This document shows positions 3,301-46,903 of a stretch of DNA of 64,000 nt, in pieces. The stretch covers positions 71,260,937 through 71,324,936 of the forward strand of contig NC_133617.1 of NCBI RefSeq assembly GCF_048593235.1, written 5' to 3'. Position 1 is the first letter of the stretch; the number at the start of each line of letters is the position of its first letter. Origin of the DNA: Sminthopsis crassicaudata. Its lineage: Eukaryota. A program made the translations under genes and the position numbers. Under the pieces are notes generated by a model that ran no database searches, was not told where the DNA came from, and saw nothing but the letters and a program-made list of their open reading frames with translations.

Positions 3301-6300
3301 CATAGTGTTTTCACATTTTTTGTTACTCTTGTTTGCTTGCATTTTGCTTTCTTTCTCATTTTTTCTTTTTGATCTGATTTGTGTGTGTGTGTGTGTGTGC
3401 AATATAATTGTGGACATACTTGGCTTTCTCAGTGGCAGGAAGGGGTTGGGTTAAGACGGCGACTCATATGGAAAAGGTCTCCTGAGGTGCAGGTGAGGGA
3501 AGAAGTAAATACCGCAGAGAGATTCTAGGCCCAGAGGTCACTCTGGGAAGAGTCAGATATCAGGTGGGCAGGGCAGATAGCAGCCTGGGGAGAGGTCCGG
3601 AGCTGGGGCGGGGTGCGGCAGAAAGTCTGGACAGCAGGATGGGGGAGAAGGGAGGGGGCTGGACTAAATTATCTCTGGTCCCTTCCAACTCTGAAAGTTT
3701 AAGAATTCTGGTTCATCATTTACCACCTGTGTGACCTAAAACAAATCATTAAATGTTTCAACTTCTTCATAAGAAAAACCCTGTCCTGCGTCCATCTCCG
3801 GGTAAAAACGCTGGCTGTGTAGCCCTGGCTTTGCTATTGGGGAACAACCTCGGTCATCATAAATCGCTCTCACCTCACTTTGTCTACAAAACATATTTGA
3901 TTCTGAGGTCCTTTCTAGCCCGAAAACTGGAGAGTCTGCCCCAGGGAACCCCAGTCTTTGCTACTGTCTCTTCCCTCTGACGTTATGAAGCAGCCTGGCT
4001 GAGGGAGCCTTGCAGGGGCAGAGAGAGGGAGGGAGGACCCAGGCCCGGCCCCCCTCCCTCTGCACCTCCCGCTCTGGAGGAGGGGAACCGTTGGAGGCGG
4101 GGAAGTCTCCGCACTCCCACACCAGGCTGCAGTCTTTGGGGCAGGGCGTGACCAGGGCTAGTTGGGGGGAGACAGGCTAGGAAAGGACGATGCCCGGGAG
4201 GTGCTGCGTGGTGCCGGCCCGTGCGAGGTGCCAACTGGGTGAGGAAAAGTCACCTCGGGACAAAAAGCCAACAGCGGAAAGCGGCAGCGGAGGCTCGGAG
4301 GCTACAGGCGGCTGCGATGCGCAGCGGGAGGAGCCCCCGGTCAGCGGGACCTTAGAAGCCTGAGCCCCCAGTCCTTTTCTCCCCCCTCTTCCTGAGGCAG
4401 CACTGAGAAAGCAGTCACAGAACATCACAACTGAGGAGGCTCGGAAGCCATGCGGCCAGTGCCTGTCCCGGGGCCGGGAGGGGCCCAGAGCGGTCTCTCC
4501 CAGACCTGGCCTCTCCCAGACCTGGCCTCACTCCGAGGCTCCGGCACTCACCATGGCAAAGAGGTTGTCATAACCCTTCACTTTGGTGGGAACTTTGGAG
4601 AACTTCTGGTCAAAGGCGTCAGAGATGTTGTGGGCTGGGTCCGTGGAGATGATGAGGACGCTTTCTCTCCCCTTGGACAGCTGTACTGCTAGGCTGCAGC
4701 TGGGCAGAGTGAGAGCCAGGGGAGCCAGCTGGAGGGGCAGAAGGGGCAGAGCTCCACCCCCCTCCCAGCTCCGGTCCCACAGGCTAGGGAAGAAGAGGCT
4801 CCGGGGGGAGCAAAGACCCGGAGATCGGGGAGCCGGGCCCTACCCCAGGTCTCCCTGGAGAGGCTGTGACTCTGGGAGCAAAAGAACCAGGGAACAACAC
4901 GGGCGACCAAGGAGGGGCAGAGGACGGCAGGAGACGGGCGCAGGCCCTCCGGGTGGGAGAGCATTGTGACTCCGGGAAAGGAGCGTGGCCCTGGGGAGAC
5001 GTGGGGGACCAGGAGCAAAGGGGCGGCTACAGGAAAGGGCCCGGACCTGGGGAGAAGGGGAACGCCTGGGGGAAAGTGGGTGGGCCTGGGGGGAGGGCAT
5101 GCTGGGCCCCGAGAGCCAGGGGGGGGGGGAGAGACCCCAGGACGGGGTGCTCGGGACTGGGGGGTGGGGACCCCAGGACGGGGTGTTTGGGACTGGGGGG
5201 GACCCCAGGACGGGGTGTTCGGGACCGGGGAGGACCCCAGGACGGGGTGTTCAGGACGGGGGTGGGGGGTGGGGACCCCAGGACAGGGTGTTCAGGACCT
5301 GGGGGTGGGGACCCCAGGACAGGGTGTTCGGGACCTGGGGGTGGGGACCCCAGGACGGGGTGTTCGGGACCTGGGGGTGGGGACCCCAGGACAGGGTGTT
5401 CGGGACCTGGGGGTGGGGACCCCAGGACAGGGTGTTCGGGACTGGGGGGTGGGGACCCCAGGACGGGGTGTTCGGGACTGGGGGGTGGGGACCCCAGGAC
5501 GGGGTGTTCGGGACTGGGGGGGACCCCAGGACAGGGTGTTCGGGACCGGGGAGGACCCCAGGACGGGGTGTTCAGGACGGGGGTGGGGGGTGGGGACCCC
5601 AGGACGGGGTGCTCGGGACTGGGGGGTGGGGACCCCAGGACGGGGTGTTCGGGACTGGGGGGGACCCCAGGACAGGGTGTTCAGGACCGGGGAGGACCCC
5701 AGGACGGGGTGTTCAGGACGGGGGTGGGGGGTGGGGACCCCAGGACAGGGTGTTCAGGACCTGGGGGTGGGGACCCCAGGACAGGGTGTTCGGGACTGGG
5801 GGGTGGGGACCCCAGGACGGGGTGTTCGGGACTGGGGGGGACCCCAGGACAGGGTGTTCGGGACTGGGGGGTGGGGACCCCAGGACGGGGTGTTCGGGAC
5901 TGGGGGGGACCCCCGGGCAGAATGCTCGGGACCCCGGGGGGGGGGGGGGGAGCTGGCCCCTGGAAGAAGGAATGGGGCAGCTGGGGCAGGGATGCCTGGA
6001 ACCCAGAGAGAAGCTGCACCCTGGGGCTGTTAGAAGAATGGGAATGCAGGAAGTCGGGGCTGCGCCAGGCCCGGGGAGGAAGCTGGACCTCGGCCAGCAG
6101 CCGGCTGGGTGCTCCGTTCCAGATCCCCGCCCCCTTTTTTCTCCTTCCCCAGGTCCGGTCCCCGCACCATCCGCAGCCCCCACCGCCGGGGGAGGGAGTG
6201 GTACAACCCATTCATTCCTGACTTCCCTCCACCCACCACGGCTTGGTACGACTCTTCCCTTTCCCACCACCTGCCGCTTCCCCCGTCGCCCGATCGCGGT

Positions 6301-6532
6301 GGTACAGCCCACCGGTCTCCATCCCCGTGGCCCCGTCCCCTACCGCAGTGGTACTTCCCACCCGCCCCCACCTGCAAGTGGTCTTGCCCACGCCGCCCTT
6401 GCCCCCGACGAAGATCCACTTGAGGCTGCGCTGCTCGATGATGTTGCTGAGTGTGGGCTCCAGGGGCTCCACATCGGGCGCATCCTCGAACTCCTCTGAC
6501 TCCAGCCCCCACCCGGCCACCCCAGCCGCCAT
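340..6532 (-). CDS. GET3: GET3/ASNA1 (TRC40) tail-anchored protein targeting ATPase, complete, 348 aa
   Basis: Coding exons (-): 6532-6372, 4699-4552, 2591-2443, 2361-2211, 2063-1956, 817-620, 471-340. All introns are GT-AG with compatible phases; total 1047 nt = 348 aa + TAG. Motifs GGKGGVGKT (P-loop), STDPAHN, DTAPTGH and CKMC. Confidence 0.98.
5134..5940. repeat. G-rich minisatellite in GET3 intron 1 (32-41 bp units)
   Basis: 22 copies of the core ACCCCAGGAC(G/A)GGGTG from 5134 to 5877, plus a degenerate copy at 5909. Unit lengths are 36, 32 or 41 bp. Confidence 0.95.
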
Positions 6533-26100: not shown

Positions 26101-26915
26101 TTTTTTAAATTAATTTTATAATTATAACTTTTTTGACAATACATATGCATAGGTAATGCAATGGCAGGCATTCCCATACATATTAAATATGTTATAGTAT
26201 ATCCTAGGTACGATATACATGTGCAGAACCGAATTTTGTTGTTGTTGTTGTTGCAAAGGAAGGATTGGATTCAGAAGGTATAAATAACCAAAAATGCTCA
26301 CAGTTTACACTCATTTCCCAGAGTTCCTTCTCTGGGTGTAGCTGATTCTGTCCATCACTGATCAATTGGAATTGGAATAGCTCTTCCCTATGTTGAAGAC
26401 ATCCACTTCCATCAGAATACATCCTCATACAGTTGAAGTGTATAACGATCTCCTAGTTCTGCTCGTTTCACTCAGCATCAGTTGATGTAAGTCTCTCCAA
26501 ACCTCTCTGAAATCATCCTGTTGGTCATTTCTTACAGAGCAATAATATTCCATAACATTCATATACCATAATTTACCCAACCATTCTCCAATTGATGGAC
26601 ATCCATTCATTTTCCAGTTTCTAGCCACGACAAAAAGAGCTGCCACGAACATTTTGGCACATACAGCTCCCTTTCCGCTCTTTATTATTTCTTTGGGATA
26701 TAAGCCCAGTAGTAGCACTGCTGGGTCAAAGGGTATGCACAGTTTGATAACTTTTTGGGCATAGTTCCAAGTCACTCTCTAGAATGGCTGGATTCTTTCA
26801 CAACTCCACCAACAATGCACCAGTGTCCCAGTTTTCCCACAGCCCCTCCAACATTCATCATTATTTGTTCCTGTCATCTTAGCCAATCTGACAGGTGTGT
26901 AGTGGTATCTCAGAG
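26101..26915 (-). mobile_element. 5'-truncated young L1 with TSD
   Basis: TSD CACTATATTTCTT at 26088-26100 and 26916-26928. Carries an ORF2 C-terminal remnant (KLCIPFDPAVLLLGLYPKE). Confidence 0.88.
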
Positions 26916-28239: not shown

Positions 28240-29720
28240 GCGGAATCCCGAGCTCAGAGAGGCTCTCCGCGCCTCGGACCCCTCAGCTAAAGCGCCCGAA
28301 GGAGGCCTCGTCCTATAAGTAAATCGCTCGTGGCTGCCCGAGGCCGTCCGCGTCCGGCGGGGTGGGTGGGTGCAGATTTGGAGGGAACTTAGAAAGACCG
28401 ACTCAATAAAAGCTCAGTCTACTTTATTACTGAGAGAGAAACCGAAGCTCCGACAGGCTGAAGCAGAGGGGCGGTCTGAGACGGAGGAACGAATCTCAGA
28501 GGTCTCCACCCCTCTAGGGAAGGCGCTGAGGTGGGAGGAGCAGCTGAGCTCACCCAGAGAAAGGGTGTTGCTTCCCAGAATCCTTTGCCCGGAAGCCGCC
28601 GGGAGGGAGGGCTTTGCGCGGGGTCCGAAGCCTTCCCAGCCTCCTTTGCGCGGCACCTGGTCACAAAATGGCGGCCCGAGGGAGACGGGCGGAGCCTGCG
28701 GGCCGGGAGCCGTCGGGCCCCGCGGGCGGCGGCGCTGGCGGAGGCGGCGGGAGCCGGTGGCCCGGGCCGGGTGGCGCCGGGGCCGAGTCCGGAGCGGGCT
28801 CGGGAGCCGGGGAAGAGGAGGAGGACGCGGCGGCGGCGTCGGGCCCGGCCTCGGGGGGCGTGAACCTATTCGCCAACGACGGCAGCTTCCTGGAGCTGTT
28901 CAAGCGGAAGATGGAGGAGGAGGAGGAGCGGCGGCGGCAGCGGCAGCAGCAGCAGAGTCCGGACGAGCCGCCCGCGCCCCCGGGGGCCGCCGCCCCTGCC
29001 GCCGCCCCTGCTGGCGGCGGCGAGCCGAAGAAGAGGAGCGGGCCCGGCCCGGCGGCGCTCAGCTTCGTAAGGAGCCGCCGCCCGCGGGAGGGCGGGACGG
29101 GCCGCGCCGCGCCGCCGGGACAGACAGACAGACCGAGAGACAGACAGAGGGAGGGCCCATCCCGGGAGCGGGGGAGGGCAGATCGGGCGCCGCCGCCGCC
29201 GAGGGCCCCGTAGCACGGGCCTCCCCTCGGGCGGGGGCACTGTGCGGGTCGGGCCAGGATGGGATGGGGCCGTCGCTCCCAGCGCTTCCCTTCCCCGCCT
29301 TTTAAATCGGCTGCTGCCGGACCGGGGCCCCGCTTGCGTCGTCATCCTCAGCCCCCGAAATTTGACCTTTGCTACCAAGCCTGCTCTGGATGGAAGGGGG
29401 CGGGACGGGCGGGTGCGTGCCGCGGCTGGCGAGGCTGTGGAAGGGACTCGGGCCGGGAAGGGAGACGTCCTCAGAAAGATGCGCGCGAACCCGGCAGACT
29501 GATGCCGAGACCTCAGACGCTGGAGCTGCGGCCTCCACGGCTCTCCGAGGCTGGCCATTGAGATGACCAAGTGGTGCGAACCTCGGTGGCTAGCCGTGGG
29601 GATCGGGGGATGTGGCTGGGGTCCGCGGGAGGTAGTGGGAGCCAGGCTTATCATCCGGCTCGCTGCCCTGCCGGGGCTGACTGAGCAGGTTCGGGCTGCA
29701 TCGTCCTGAGAAGTCCCTTG
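28240..29720 (+). promoter_or_regulatory. CpG-island promoter of TRIR
   Basis: Very high CpG/GC content. YY1-type AAAATGGCGGC overlaps the start codon. Confidence 0.75.
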
Positions 29721-30354
29721 TGCTCCTCTCTGATTGCTGCGTAGGTTGGCCAGGCTGGGCACGGCTTGGTACTACACGACAGGCATGAGGAGCTAAGATG
29801 ATCTAAGGCCAGGACTCCCTGTCCCGTTGTGTAGTGGGCTACATGGCCGCCAGGGCAGCCCCCAGGGCTCCTATAATGGTTGCAGTCTTCTATCCCTTCA
29901 CCCAGGTGGGCAAGCGGAGAGGCGGGAACAAGCTAGCCCTCAAGACAGGAATAGTAGCCAAGAAGCAGAAGACGGAGGATGAGGTGAGTGCCTGCTGCCT
30001 GTGTAGTTTGGGGGGAGGGAAGGGGGGGGGGCCTTTTCCCTTCTAGGAGAATAGGACTGGCTGGCTCCAGTCTCCACAAAGTGCAGACTTCAGGGCTAGA
30101 AACACTGGGCTGCTGTGAACCTGGCTGCTGATCTAGTGGCCCAGGGTCTAAGGCCTAGGAGGAGAGCTGGGCTTTGGACATCCTGAAGCTCCTGGTTTTC
30201 TAGACCTCATGCTCTCCTATGCCTGTCTTCCCCCTTTTGTCCCCAGGTTATGACAAGTAAAGGAGACGCTTGGGCCAAGTACATGGCGGAAGTGAAAAAA
30301 TACAAGGCACATCAGTGCAGTGATGATGACAAAACCCGGCCCCTGGTGAAATAA
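28668..30354 (+). CDS. TRIR: TRIR (C19orf43), telomerase RNA component-interacting RNase, 194 aa
   Basis: Exons 28668-29066, 29906-29983, 30247-30354, all phase 0 and GT-AG. Motifs NLFANDGSFLELFKRKME and KGDAWAKYMAEVKKYKAHQCSDDDKTRPLVK. Candidate polyA signals ATTAAA 30673 and AATAAA 32025. Confidence 0.96.
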
Positions 30355-33300
30355 CTCTTTCCGCCAAGGACTTTCTGCATTGTACATACTTATTTAACGC
30401 AGCAAAAGAACAATAGCATTTTCACCAAGGACTCAAAACACAGAAGACAAACTTGTAGCTTTCTGGCGCCAGCGGATGATTCTTCAAGACTTTTTATACC
30501 TTGAGCACTTGACTTCTGAGACTTATTAGTATGTGGTTTACTGTTTCGATCTTTTTCCTCCCTACCACCCTCCTTTTCCAATCCTTCATCCACCCTTCCC
30601 TTTCTTCCTCATCACTTCTGGGAAGTAAAGAACTCAACTAAATAGTTGGAGGATTTTTGTTTCTTCTTTTTAATTAAAAAGACAGGTTAGGAAATTGAGA
30701 AATGACTTCTCCCTGAGTTGTACCCAAGTCCGGTATTGGTGCTGCCATCTTTTCTAAGGGTCTCTCTGGTTTGATATGCAATAGCATCTTTTGGGGAAAT
30801 CCATTTTTGTCCTCTGGGTATGGGAAGGGCTTGTCAGAAACATCTCCCCTTCTGGAGATGGGGCTAGTGGGTTTTATTGGAGTTCTTAGTGGCTCCCCTT
30901 TTATTTCATCCTGTAATATATTGGGCTCTTGTAGTCTGGGTGGTACTGGCAGGTGGCACTGGACTTTGGAGCTCAAAGGAGTTTGACATGTTTCTCACTT
31001 TTTCTGTAGACTAATCTCCTCTGCCCAGGTGCCCCTGTGACATTTGTCTGCCTAAGTCTTTTATTTCTCTCTCCCTGCAGATATGCTTATCCCCTTCTCT
31101 GGGGCCCCTTTGAATTCTTATGACCTTCAAAGGGAGTTCCAACATCAGAGATTTCTATTGTAACTGGTTGGCCTGCTGTGAGGCCAATATCTGTGCCAAC
31201 CCCCTCACCTTCAGGGCAAGCAAGACTCTTCTAAACTCATTTAAAAAAAAATAACGGTGTCCACATGCCCTAAATCCAGGTATCCATGTTCCCCTTTACC
31301 CCCAGCCCACACCACACTTAAACCTCTGGCTTGCCCCATTGCATCCCCTTCACCAGTGTAATGCTTTTGAGTATGTATTTTCCTCTGAAGAACGTTCTTG
31401 TCTAAGGCCATGCTTCAGGGATACCTCAAATTTAACTTTCTGATTTTTGCCTTTATTGGAACTATTCCCCTTTGGCCTATATTTAGGTGCCTGGGGAAAT
31501 GTGGTGGGGCAAGTGTTTTCTGTGTATTCTAATGGGAAAATGTTGAAGGGATAGTTCCTTTGATCCAGGGTGTCTCTTGCCCTTTGGCTAGGGAAAGCGA
31601 ACCTGACTGGGAAGTGAAGACTTCCCTTTGCCTCTGAATGATGTTTCTCTAATCCCAGTTTGATGCCCTAGGTAGCTTTGGGAGCAAGTTTTACCCCCAA
31701 AGGCTGGTTGGGGCTTTTGCTCCTTGTACTTTTCCTTTTTCTTTCCTCAAAGTCCCCTTCTCTCTCCCCCCTCCCATAGCATGGATGGTGCTTGTCCCTG
31801 GACAGTGAGGTAATGCTTCTGGGATGCAGGGGGGTGGTAAGAGGTGTAGTAGGGGTGTAGTTCCTACTCTCCTGTGGTGCTGCTCTGCTTGTCTGAATTT
31901 GGAGTAGCCATTGGTTACTTTGCCTTCTTCTGGCTCCCTTTCTCTACCCCACACATGTCCCTTTGTGTGGCTCCTTTCCCTTTCCCTAAGGAATTAATGT
32001 TTAAAAGTGCTGACTTTAAATGAAAATAAAAAAGTGATCTAAGAGCTGCCTGTATGTGTTCCTTCTGGAGGCAGCTTCTGACCCCTGCTTGGAGTCTCAG
32101 GCTTGAGATCACAGGCTCATAAATGTGGAGCTTGGAAGGGACCTTAGCGCCCACCTAGTCCAATCTAAATTTTAGGAAACTGTCTCTTTAAAAGATTGTA
32201 CAAGGTCACACTTTCACAAGAGGTAAAAAGTCTGCTTTTGAATCCAAAAAACACATTGACTAGCTTGTTCTTCCTGCTTTCATTTCTTAACTGCCAGGCC
32301 CCAGGGAGAATGAAGTCTGCTGATAACTTGGTGCCCTGGCAGCTGTTTTCTGGGAATGCCCTAGGCCCTATGAGAACCTGCATCCTAAATAGCCTTCACC
32401 AGCTGTGGATATGAGGCACTAGGCTTCTTGAACTCTGCCCTAAGTTCATCAGGAAAGTAATGGGATAAGATAGGATCTGAGCTCAGTGCAACACCCTGCA
32501 AGATCCTAGTCTTTACAGAGAAAACACTGCCCTGAGCTTGCTCAGAAGTGAAGAGTAACTATCCACTGTTTGAAGTGAGCCAAATTGTAGTCTTCCAAGA
32601 CATCCCTGTATCTGTGACCATCCTTTCTTAGGAAACCATTGGAATTTGGATTCTCATTCATTTTAGGTTTAATGTAACAGTAGGACTGAATGCCTCTGAA
32701 GGTTTTCTCCAACCCTGATTCCCATTGCAAACAGCACAGGGGGTCCCGTTTTATTTGCAACACATTTTATTGCTTATCTTTTACATGATCAGGGGCCCAG
32801 TTCATCTCTTCTACTGGAACTAGCCCAGAGATAATCATTAATGAAGCTCCTCTCTAGTCACCCTTCCCCTACATTGGGGGTAGCCTGGGAATACCCAAAA
32901 TGACCAGACAAGAGCCCCTGCCAGCAGAAAGGAGGGCTATGCCCTGGGATTGGGGGGAAGAGTCTTGTCTATGTTGAAGGCAGTAGTTCTCCTCTGGTGA
33001 GCCATTATGTGTGAAACCATGTCATGCTGCTTCCCTCTCTGCATCCCTGCTCCACAGAATTAGTTTAGCTTAAAAAAATAAACCCCAAACCTAAGGAACC
33101 CTGTTCCTCAAAGTAGGTCATACATGACCCCACTGTCCTCAGTACTAAACCAGGGGCTTTAAGGCAAGCAAGATTCAACCTGTCCAGGGAGTAAGGGAAG
33201 GACAGACGAATATCCCAATTCTATCTGCCCAGCTTTCAGGATTATGAAAGAACAGAGTAGAGATGTTTAGTGACCAAAGTTGACCCAACTTGGGAGGGAC

Positions 33301-33951
33301 CAGGATTCTGACCCAAAAAGGTATGTCTGGTTGAAGTGAGGTAGAAGAAGAGAGACTAAAGGTTCCTTTTCATGTCACCAGATGGTATAGGGGGCAGGTA
33401 ACAAGATCCAAAACATCAAGCTTGTTAGTAAGTTTTCTGATTATCATTATCTTACCAGCAAAACCCCAAGCAGAGAGGGAACCAAGGTAATCTGTTCCTC
33501 CCACACCCTTACCACCCCCATCCTACTGGGCTTTAGCTAGTGGACATAACTCCTGTAATCAGGATTTAAAAGGATTTTTCTCCCATCACCTTTAGGAGCA
33601 GCTCAGGTACTGGGGCTTCAGGACTCAATGTTATTGGGTGAGAAAAATTAGCTTTCAGGATCATCTTTAAAAACTCAGCAGTAAATGGGGATGGGGGAGG
33701 AAACTGTAGTTACTTAACCCCCCAAAAGTGAAACTGAGCTAGGGATGACATACTTAGTATGCACTTGGCCTGGCTCAGGCCAGGACACCCATGGAGCCAC
33801 AACCTCTTGAGTGGGCGCCGCCAAGTCAGGCTCAGGCATTCTTTGATATGTTCCCCAAATATGAAAAATGTCTAGCTCCAGTAGCTGCTGCTTTCCCCTT
33901 GGGGCTCACCTGAGTAGGCCTGGGGGACATGTTGGCTGCCAGGCTCCATAT

Positions 33952-36004
33952 TCAGCTTGTCTCATAGGAAGAAAGCAGGGCTGTGTCCACTGGCTCCATG
34001 CAAGAGGGACATGTGAGGGAGCGCATGAGCCAGTCATCAATGCAGTGGACGTGGTAGGTATGCAGGCATGGCAAGAAGCGTATGGCATCCCCATACACAA
34101 AGTCCAACATGCAGATCACACACCTACGGGGACCAGGGATGGATGAATGTAGCACCAGTTCTTACCCTCTTCTTCACCCACCCACAGCCCACCCCCTCTA
34201 TGCCCAGCATCTCAGCTCCGATTGCCACAGAAGCCTCCCCTTGAGTACCCAGACTTGAACTATACTGTTGACTGAAGAGACTAGGGCCTGCCTTCAAGGA
34301 TCTCAGCATGAGGGAGTCAAGGAATGGCAGACCTTGGCCTTGCTCTTGGGAATCTGGAGAAAACAGAAAAGTAGAAGATCCTGGCCCTGCCTTTTAGTTC
34401 ACAGTTTGGGACAGACCCAAAACCTGGAAGCTCATTAGGAGCTGTCAAACTTGAGGGACTGGAGTGAATTTAGATGAACTCCAAGAAAAACCCAGTTGGG
34501 ATTGAGCTCAAGGATATGGTCAAGATTAACATGGGTAGGTCTCGGGGCCTGGGTGTTTCCCAGACTTCCCTCCTAAAAAGAAAAAGAGTGAGAGCCTCAC
34601 TACTGAGGGACCTCAGGTTTCAGCTTCCAGGAGGACTGGGCTGCAACATTCCCTTCAGGAGCCGGGGGTATCCTTGTCCTGGTCCCCACCCTTACTCTTT
34701 CATTTTCTTTTCTGACCCCTCAGAGCCAGGGTCGAAGATGCCCTTGGGCAGGTGCTGGATGAGGCCAATTCTCTGGGCGATGAGGATCTGCTCCTCCTCT
34801 GTGAGCTGTGCGGCCAGTCTGCTCTGGCTCGGAGATGGGTGGTACACTGGGATTGGCTCCCGTCCCTGGGGGATGGGGACAGGATATTACATGGCAACTT
34901 GTCCCTGGGGAACTTCTCTTTCAACCTGCCTGTATCTAGTTCCCTATGGGGCTTGGCTTCAAGTGGTCTCGCTTTAAGGGATCTATGAGCCCTGTACCCT
35001 CTGCATCTCTTCTACTGTTTCCCAGGGATCCTAATCCCTCGAGTGCTCCACTTCTGAATGGGACCAAGACCTCCTTCCTCTATGTCACTACTGTCCTGCT
35101 GACTGCAATAAACTCCCCCATCTCTGTGACTGGATCTAGAGCAGGAGAGGCCCCAGAGATCATTTAAACCGACACTTTCGTTTTCTATAGAGGAAAACAG
35201 GGACACAGACTTAGCCAAGCTCACAGGGCTGGTAAACAGGCAGCGAGAATTCAGAAGATGTTCTGAATCCTTACTCCTCCTGCCTTATTCAATTATAGGG
35301 CTTCTGTGCTTCTCTTGTTCTGGGATTTCTAATCAGTCCCTCTAACCCCAGTCCCGACCTTGTCTGGTGTGGTAAATCCCAAAGGCCCCTCCTTTCCCAA
35401 CTCTATCATGTCCTTTACTCTGCAGGGTGAAAGCAGCTTCCAAAGGCTTTCTCTGACTACAGTACAGGGCGGGGTGGTGGGTGTCAGAGTACTACATCTC
35501 TGGGGGGGTGGGGGCAGGGGTGAGATGCTTGAGGTTCCCTATGCTTGGCCCTGCCTTGTTTTTCTGAGGAACTAGGCCGTTGGTCCCTGGAACTAGGCCA
35601 GTCTCTTCTGGGACAGGGGGTGGGCCACAGCAGTTGCTGGAGTTCTCTAGATCAAAGCTCTGCCTGGTCTCTCGGGAGTGAAGCGGACACAGGGATGCCC
35701 TGACCCCCAGGCCTGCCCTGCCCCTCCGGGGCCCTGGGGGTGACGGCAGAGGCCGGGTTCCTCTGTGCTCAGCCCTTCCCTGCCTCTCTGGGCCGCAGTG
35801 TCAGATGGGCCGGTTCCTCGATTCCTAGCCTGGTCTGTCCAGCGCGGTGCCCATCCTCTGGGAGGGTGGGGGCGGCGGCGGGTCCCCGGGGGAGCTGCTT
35901 CCCTCCCCATAGTCGTTGAGCAACGACAGAAGGTCGGTAACTCCGGTCCCCACCTCGTCCCCAGCCCTGATGCCGGACCGCTGAGAAGACAGGCAGTTCC
36001 CCAT
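33952..36004 (-). CDS. RNF11-like RING-H2 protein (intron-containing RNF11 paralogue); exon 1 donor uncertain
   Basis: Exon 1 starts at ATG 36004 (MGNCLSSQ...DLLSLLNDYGEG...PPPPPPSQ; RNF11-equivalent end at 35858). Exon 2 is 34865-34696 (170 nt, cag/gtaagg). Exon 3 is 34123-33952 (CVIC...CLHTYHVHC...CPSC...SSYETS*). Two AATAAA on the minus strand at 32771-32766 and 32755-32750. Confidence 0.85.
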
Positions 36005-36350
36005 GCCCGGCCCGGCCCACTCAGCGGCGGCCAGGGCCCCTCCTTCTAGGCTCCCAGGCCCCGGCGTCCGTTTCAGCTCCAGAGGCCCCGGACAGCCCGA
36101 GCCCCGCCATGGTCCCTCCACGGCCGCGGGGGCTCTGGGCCCAACTTGGACTCACCGCTGTTTACAATCCCAGACGGAAGTGCTGCAGCTCGCGGCGCAG
36201 AGGATCGCGGGGAATGTAGTTACCGGCGCTCTCGGGGAAGGGGCGTGAAACTGAGCGCTGAACTGAGCTCGTCATGCGCATGTGCACGCGCAGGTGAGGC
36301 GCCTCCCCTAGATTCCGTGCGGGCGGAGGTAGAGGGGCGGGAACCACGTG
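35700..36350 (-). promoter_or_regulatory. CpG-island promoter of the RNF11-like gene
   Basis: CpG-rich. ETS CGGAAGTG near 36175, ZNF143/THAP11-like ACTACATTCCC (-) near 36210-36221, NRF1-like TGCGCATGTGCA near 36275. Confidence 0.65.
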
Positions 36351-37479
36351 TTCTTGCTGACCCTGGACACTTAAGGTGATTTCAGAAGTGACCTGGGTCT
36401 TATATTATCATTATTCTTGAATCTTTCTTAACTCCCTTAAGTGATTGGGACTCCCAGCCTGGGACTGATCTCATGCTTTCATCCTGGTACCTTCCTCCCT
36501 ACCCCCATGCTGCGTGTAGGGCGTCCTAGCTTTGAGAAATATCTGTGGAAAGAATGAAGGCAAAAGCCTGAATCCCTGGATAGGACAGAAGGTCTTTCCC
36601 CTGCCCTGCCTCATTCTTATCATAACTGCCCTTTCACTGGAGCACGCAGGGCCTGGATCCCCGGTCCCGCCCTCGGCCTTGCCCTTCGGGGTCCTTGTAA
36701 ACCTAGCAGTCTCTGGGAAGCGAAGGCCTTCCTTGGACCTAGGCTGCAAAGCCCGGGCGGCCAGGGGAGCTCACAGGGTCTGACTAGAACCTCTTTTATT
36801 TAGGAGACACTAAAACTGAGGCGAGGGAGATCTTTATCTAAAGTTAGGCAACAGAGCAAGGATCTCAGGGTCTCTGACTTCACGTGGTTCTTAGCCCTCA
36901 CCGGGGAGTTGGAGGGAGTGCAGAGCAATGTTCCTGCTTCCTCTTGATGGCCCAAACAATGGAAATCCAGCAGGACCTCCTCTCCAAGCACAGCCACTTA
37001 GGGCGCCCAGGAGCCTCAATCCAAGATCCTCATATCTAGAGGTGCCACAAGGGGTCCCAGGCCACCCTGCCTCCCTCTCCCGTTCTGGCTGTCCTGCCAG
37101 GATAAACAGCATGGCTCAGTCCCTTCCCCCTCGGGCCTTTGTGTTTACTGTCCCCATCCTCCCCTACTTCCTAAACTCTGGAGCGTTTGATGGATCGAAG
37201 CAATTGGGGGAGGAGGAGAACCTTCCCACGGCTCTGGCTCTGCCCCCCAGGGTGAGGACACAGCCCAGAGAACAAACAACGTGCGAGCGACCTCTTGCAC
37301 CCGCCCTGGGGAAGGCCCGGGCACGGGACAGGAGGGTTTAGGGAGCCGGCGGCCCGGGGAGGATGGGTATGGGAAGAAGGGCTTGTACGCCGAGGAATCT
37401 GCAGCCACTTCCGCCACCTTATCTAGGAGGAAACAAGGCAGCTCGGGGACTTGGAGGCCAGCGTGGAAGAGGTGCCCAG

Positions 37480-46903
<9,424 letters not shown>

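Follow-up and report, generated by a model that had tools for sequence, protein, structure and literature searches.

The window studied here is a stretch of 64,000 nucleotides from Sminthopsis crassicaudata (contig NC_133617.1 of assembly GCF_048593235.1, positions 71,260,937 to 71,324,936), and all positions below are counted within it. A second RNF11-type gene was found on its minus strand, between TNPO2 and the gene at the position of TRIR, spliced and with its own CpG island. The locus is very probably the dasyurid orthologue of a paralogue of RNF11, known as rnf11a or 'RING finger protein 11-like' (hereafter RNF11-like), which is expressed with a shifted exon-1 splice donor and encodes a protein of 130 aa. 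An earlier interpretation of the letters alone (the sequence-only reading) had proposed an intron-containing RNF11 paralogue between TRIR and TNPO2, and this position was borne out by collinearity of the window with the koala locus, TRIR being named by position only.

Gene structure and transcripts

Eight public RNA runs were compared with positions 32400-36400 and six of them, from five studies, gave splice joints in spliced contigs. The joint of intron 1 (34864/5 to 35953/4) was present in four runs (X9, X13, X11 and X15), that of intron 2 (34121-34694) in all six, and that of an intron in the 3' untranslated region (3'UTR; 33068 to 33910) in four (X9, X6, X11 and X12). One X11 contig of 592 nt unites exons 1 (from 36161), 2 and 3. 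In X9, read depth was 140-390 over the exons versus about 10 over the introns (10-40x).

The spliced coding sequence is open over 393 nt, gives a product of 130 aa and has GT-AG borders at every intron. Exon 1 (35954..36161, on the minus strand like all exons below) consists of 5'UTR, with RNA contigs reaching at least 36161, and of 51 coding nt from the main ATG at 36004. These encode the 17 residues MGNCLSSQRSGIRAGDE, which begin with MGNCLSS as predicted, and the exon ends at the donor GAG|GTGGGG. Because the RNA contigs join 35954 to 34865, the coding part of exon 1 is 51 nt and the proline-rich stretch behind it is intronic; of the RNF11-like exon boundaries claimed before, that of exon 1, which would give ~150 coding nt, did not hold, but its phase 0 did, and so did exon 2 with its 170 nt and phases 0 and 2. 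A GC donor considered at the formerly read end of exon 1 was rejected, as its phase does not fit and the RNA puts the true donor 99 nt upstream. Exon 2 (34696..34865, phase 0 in and phase 2 out), both joints of which occur in RNA contigs, encodes GREPIPVYHPSPSQSRLAAQLTEEEQILIAQRIGLIQHLPKGIFDPGSEGSEKKMK(E). Exon 3 (33910..34123), delimited by RNA joints, has a coding part (34123-33952) with the RING-H2 domain and the DTALL motif. The protein ends in ...VDTALLSSYETS before the stop codon at 33954-33952, after which 42 nt of 3'UTR lead to the donor CTCAG|GTGAGC.

The 3'UTR intron (33069..33909, minus strand, 841 nt, with an alternative acceptor at 33045) is mostly removed, with 422 spliced versus 9 unspliced in X9, and a minority of transcripts retain it. 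It is followed by the non-coding exon 4 (32745..33068), which is about 90% identical to koala, has AATAAA signals at 32771 and 32755, and in which RNA contigs end near 32746-32794. Conservation in koala extends to both splice sites of this intron and to the last exon, including its first AATAAA. A 3'UTR of ~1.2 kb with two AATAAA had been described; both signals are there, but 841 nt are spliced out in most transcripts, making a fourth exon.

The promoter lies in a CpG island (35800..36400, no strand assigned; GC 0.61-0.72, CpG observed/expected 0.67-0.94). As had been claimed, this island is the gene's own, that of TNPO2 (37800-38600) being separate and about 1.5 kb beyond. The 5'UTR contains an upstream open reading frame (ORF) of 29 codons (36021..36110, minus strand), with the same length and position in koala (L001 9895-9984). 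Its start context is strong (GACCATGG) and it stops 18 nt ahead of the main ATG. The 98-aa ORF around exon 1, of which just 17 residues are coding, gave no matches in a word-based protein search.

A minor isoform (35555-35982, minus strand) continues past exon 1 to 35555 and is then joined by a GC-AG intron to exon 2. It is unproductive, with an ORF stop at 35827-35825, and had a depth of 7 versus 169 in X9. P0260, an Ensembl model from the devil, has an unusual N-terminus that this isoform matches and seems to have been built on the equivalent exon. At position 33801 the assembly has A, C was found in seven of the eight RNA runs, and X6 (labelled organism B) carries the assembly base; the difference is probably a common allele.

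Family identity and phylogeny

A phmmer search with exon 2 alone gave 175 family matches, the best 85% identical, and all those inspected were of the RNF11 type. This 170-nt exon encodes the middle block of the family, PVYHP...LTEEEQ..IAQRIG.I.HLP.G. The best matches were reptile proteins sharing MG.CLSSQ, KGIFDPG, CVICML and PCLH. Word-based searches with lizard and koala queries returned proteins named 'RING finger protein 11-like' in squamates, turtles, alligator, emu, frogs and marsupials, and also listed 'rnf11a' of teleosts and sharks, besides canonical RNF11 and 'rnf11b'.

A maximum-likelihood tree was computed from 47 sequences and about 150 columns with hagfish as outgroup. An initial tree, for which three distant homologues served as outgroups, could not be used because its long branches were scattered; no invertebrate outgroup was reliably placed. 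In the hagfish-rooted tree, shark 'rnf11a', teleost rnf11a and tetrapod RNF11-like form one clade (support 100/96), with a teleost and tetrapod subset inside it (99/90). The window gene is sister to that of the devil (99/94) within a marsupial clade (100/99), and inside the RNF11-like clade the branching order is largely that of vertebrate phylogeny, from sharks to teleosts, amphibians and amniotes. Both types occur in cartilaginous fishes, as 'rnf11a' in sharks and rays and as 'rnf11b' in the chimaera Callorhinchus. Lerista, Pogona, Candoia and emu have both RNF11 and RNF11-like, as does Monodelphis (P0243 and P0278, respectively). The duplication that gave rise to RNF11 and RNF11-like appears to predate the split of sharks and bony vertebrates.

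Human RNF11 (1p32.3), a RING-H2 adaptor of NEDD4-family HECT ligases with 154 aa, shares with the window gene three coding exons with the same phases, the MGNC start, the PVYHP...LTEEEQI.IAQRIGLIQHLPKG block, an eight-ligand RING-H2 and a C-terminal D..LL. Over exons 2-3, 90 of 110 aligned residues are identical, in line with the ~80% estimated before. The window gene differs in belonging to a separate ancient paralogue clade and in lying in a different chromosomal block, and its protein is without equivalents of 37-PPPY-40 and 11-DDISLL-16, the key HECT-docking and AP-2/GGA signals of RNF11 (PMC7697665). Canonical RNF11 can be recognised by the sequence MGNCLKSPTSDDISLL... Teleost rnf11a and the RNF11-like proteins of NCBI are, in contrast, orthologous to the window gene by tree and synteny and share its MGNCLSSQ start, and the amniote members also share KGIFDPG, CVICML and PCLH with it. 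Members outside the marsupials measure 146-157 aa and, unlike the window protein, have kept PPPPY and ADDLSLLND.

Conserved gene order

Positions 28359-41000 of the window are collinear with the koala locus, where the RNF11-like gene stands head-to-head with an importin of 899 aa with IBN_N and HEAT domains (TNPO2) and tail-to-tail with a gene of 195 aa. Sugar glider and the Komodo dragon (Varanus) have the same arrangement as koala. In emu the order is F-box/WD40 (FBXW9), importin (TNPO2), RNF11-like, a gene of 141 aa, ArsA ATPase (GET3) and HOOK, and in Xenopus tropicalis RNF11-like is followed by a gene of 243 aa and ArsA ATPase (GET3). The TNPO2/TRIR/GET3 block was thus recovered in koala, sugar glider, Komodo dragon, emu and Xenopus, and the gene order FBXW9-TNPO2-RNF11L-TRIR-GET3-HOOK2 is kept as far as emu. 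In the window itself, Pfam identified ORF fragments of GET3 (ArsA_ATPase, about 2100-2438), an F-box gene (50245+) and DHPS (59619+).

In lumpfish, rnf11a adjoins an NFI gene, and the 'rnf11a' of whale shark adjoins KRI1. We take the neighbours FBXW9, TNPO2, TRIR, GET3, HOOK2, NFIX and KRI1 to be the set of human 19p13.13-13.2. NFI, HOOK and KRI1 flanks fit the 1p/19p paralogon described in the literature, and the gene may be an ohnologue from the vertebrate whole-genome duplications. The RNF11-like gene would have stayed in the block equivalent to human 19p13.13. The sequence-only reading had seen in it an old paralogue kept in marsupials; the ancient clade and the 19p13-like block agree with this, but retention is broad outside eutherians and not special to marsupials.

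The donor shift in dasyurids

The exon-1 DNA of the window was aligned with that of koala. At the ancestral donor, koala has AGG|GTGAGC versus AGG|ATGGGC in the window (AT at 35854-35853), and at the working donor of the window, GAG|GTGGGG (GT at 35953-35952), koala has GAG|GCGGGG. All RNA contigs covering either donor site agree with the assembly letters, and in the RNA contigs of the runs examined there were 0 joints at the old donor. In dasyurids the exon-1 donor would have been destroyed by a change of GT to AT, and a new in-frame donor would have been created 99 nt upstream by a change of GC to GT. With the old donor lost and the upstream one gained, the mRNA therefore omits 33 codons that formerly encoded the N-terminal acidic dileucine and PPxY. 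The locus is an example of a splice-donor shift that rescues a reading frame.

The 99 nt between the old and the new donor (35855..35953, minus strand) are the former 3' part of exon 1 and now intronic, as follows from the koala alignment and the RNA joints. Their 33 codons read VGTGVTDLLSLLNDYGEGSSSPGDPPPPPPSQR, a proline-rich segment that still holds the old acidic dileucine (TDLLSLL in the genome) and a decayed PPxY (PPPS). Compared with koala, the segment has 74% nucleotide identity, near that of introns (70-78%), and a non-synonymous distance (dN) of 0.22, far above that of the core. In the protein alignment, a 13-residue insert, RSGTGAGDEAGAG, directly follows MGNCLSSQ in all marsupial orthologues and in none of those from sauropsids, frogs and fishes. 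The replacement donor of the dasyurids sits inside this insert, from which the transcript is spliced straight to exon 2, leaving 130 aa.

Protein motifs and loss of PPxY

RNF11 carries signals for myristoylation at Gly2 and palmitoylation at Cys4, overlapping DxxxLL/DxxLL motifs for AP-2 and GGA at residues 11-16, 37-PPPY-40, which binds the WW domains of ITCH, NEDD4, SMURF1/2 and WWP1/2, the RING-H2 domain and 144-DAALL-148 (PMC7697665). Motifs in the window protein were scored with a table of regular expressions and an alignment of marsupial proteins. All eight zinc ligands of the RING-H2 (C3H2C3) that had been read from the sequence are present (Pfam zf-RING_2, 1.2e-13), as are LTEEEQILIAQRIG and the C-terminal DxxLL in the form DTALL. 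The RNA-supported start has MGNC, a candidate MGxC signal for myristoylation of Gly2 and palmitoylation of Cys4. PPxY is absent from the spliced product, with PPPS as its genomic remnant in intron 1, and the N-terminal acidic dileucine is spliced out.

Going by these motifs, the product would be a myristoylated and palmitoylated, membrane-anchored RING-H2 protein, which may have retained E2 engagement and endosomal sorting via its C-terminus and to which the WW domains of NEDD4-family HECT ligases could presumably no longer dock. The role assigned to it earlier, that of an RNF11-type regulator bound through PPxY to the NEDD4 family and acting in TGF-beta and NF-kB signalling, was not upheld, since the product has neither PPxY nor the N-terminal acidic dileucine. 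The HECT-adaptor mechanism of RNF11 cannot be transferred to a protein from which the docking motif is gone. As the motif is present in other lineages of the family, its loss is secondary and no ground for excluding the gene from the family.

The two American opossums (didelphids), Monodelphis and Gracilinanus, and the wombat have kept PPPY, and the tyrosine is replaced by H in Dromiciops, by C in koala and brushtail possum, by S in tammar and by P/Q in sugar glider. Since the accepted marsupial phylogeny makes wombat and koala sisters, we infer at least four independent australidelphian losses of PPxY, in Dromiciops, in koala, in the group of brushtail possum, glider and wallaby, and, through exon truncation, in the dasyurids.

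Distribution and annotation

RNF11-like is not new to databases, nor is it a new kind of gene, since automated pipelines already annotate it. NCBI models exist in ten marsupials (koala and sugar glider clusters) and in many reptiles and frogs. The RNF11-like protein of Antechinus flavipes (XP_051827575.1) and the protein named RNF11 of Sarcophilus harrisii (XP_012397555.1) both have 130 aa and the same architecture as the window model, to which they are identical at 129/130 and 127/130 positions. Monodelphis, Gracilinanus, Dromiciops, wombat, koala, brushtail possum, sugar glider and tammar have forms of 163-173 aa.

Searches of 5.8 billion clusters, covering annotated proteins only, yielded no eutherian or monotreme RNF11-like protein. 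Proteins scoring nearer to the RNF11-like core of turtle than to its RNF11 core were without exception non-eutherian. 'RNF11-like' entries of bats were rejected as eutherian members, their N-terminus being of the RNF11 type (MGNC.KSPT). Placental mammals appear to be without the gene. RNF11-like is present in most vertebrates, but the eutherian protein annotations searched do not contain it, so that work on human and mouse cannot detect it. It is an added candidate among the ohnologues lost on the eutherian stem.

The literature on rnf11a, rnf11b, RNF11-like and RNF11L offered mentions in gene lists only and no characterisation of the paralogue. RNF11 is studied as the single RING protein that can dock on every NEDD4-family HECT ligase, and its review of 2020 mentions no paralogue (PMC7697665). 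One mention of 'RNF11B' is a misprint for RNF144B, and PMC5764321 does not discuss RNF11. The gene had been called uncharacterised, which agrees with the literature searched, but ten marsupials already have it under the NCBI name 'RNF11-like', and teleost rnf11a is its orthologue.

Constraint and alternative explanations

Between window and koala, exons 2-3 show 6 synonymous and 3 non-synonymous differences, with a dN of 0.0115, a synonymous distance (dS) of 0.084 and hence a dN/dS ratio (omega) of 0.14, a calculation the sequence-only reading had proposed. The distance in intron 2 is 0.255. In every other marsupial, the core of 113 aa agrees with that of Monodelphis at 108-112 of 113 positions. 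The tree has a long marsupial stem (0.16), and three to four additional core substitutions are found in dasyurids, which suggests some acceleration but does not look like decay.

Whether the dasyurid gene is a transcribed relic heading for pseudogenisation, with motif and donor losses as signs of decay and a non-functional product of 130 aa, has to be considered in this light. With the loss of the ancestral donor the transcript skips 33 codons, other australidelphians have repeatedly lost the PPxY tyrosine, and the dasyurid core is identical to that of Monodelphis at 108-109 of 113 positions versus 109-112 in other marsupials; moreover, the conserved upstream ORF could limit translation and a minor unproductive isoform is present. 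The replacement donor is, however, in frame and provides the only productive intron-1 joint seen, the other joint being minor and leading to a premature stop. The three dasyurid sequences compared (window, Antechinus and Sarcophilus) have an intact ORF and retain the eight zinc ligands, MGxC and DxxLL; the core has an omega of 0.14, and divergence is 2.7% in coding sequence versus 22% in the intron. Decay is an improbable account of this locus.

That the gene is the only RNF11 of this genome, a relocated orthologue of human RNF11, is less probable still. Canonical RNF11 was not located in this genome, but the window gene belongs to the RNF11-like clade in the tree, and Lerista, Pogona, Candoia, emu and Monodelphis each carry both genes. 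An origin by recent DNA duplication of RNF11, specific to marsupials or mammals, with insertion between TRIR and TNPO2, with which the 90/110 identity in exons 2-3 and the shared intron phases would agree, is scarcely credible, as the tree groups the gene with RNF11-like of reptiles, frogs and fishes, a forced mammal-only duplication is rejected at a cost of 36 log-likelihood units (approximately unbiased test, AU, p=0.002), and Varanus, emu and Xenopus have it at the same site by TNPO2/TRIR/GET3. The sequence-only reading had named three outcomes that would refute it (a recent duplicate nested within marsupial RNF11, a sole RNF11 in the genome, an intact syntenic eutherian copy); none of them was encountered, the last two having been addressed by indirect evidence.

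An expressed, donor-shifted RNF11-like orthologue is thus preferred, and some points weigh against it. About 150 columns underlie the tree, which does not recover RNF11 proper as a clade because that gene is so conserved. Canonical RNF11 was shown for Monodelphis, several reptiles and emu, and not in this genome. The runs are labelled 'RNA?' and some have introns at depth. The absence from eutherians rests on annotated proteins only. The small convergent gene, which neither Pfam nor the ESM Atlas gave a name, is presumed from its position to be TRIR. Finally, acylation, E2 binding and the loss of HECT binding are predicted from motifs.

Taken across therians, the RNF11-like ohnologue may tentatively be regarded as being uncoupled from HECT ligases, with loss in eutherians, repeated PPxY loss in australidelphians and a near-invariant acylation signal and RING core, although this broader proposal is doubtful. 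If it were true, the dasyurid form of 130 aa would be a natural 'minimal RNF11', and its strong conservation would speak for a core function of the family that does not depend on HECT ligases, such as E2 binding at endosomal membranes. Orthologues with and without PPxY form a natural series for asking which functions of RNF11 need HECT docking.

Other features of the window

A GC-rich tandem repeat at about 4866-6500 has long ORFs in all three plus-strand frames and looks like a minisatellite rather than a gene. The ORF fragments at 21426-22475 and 26425-26775 (minus strand) may be remnants of LINE-1 ORF2, which they resemble (e.g. ...TTLRYHYTPVRLAKM...).

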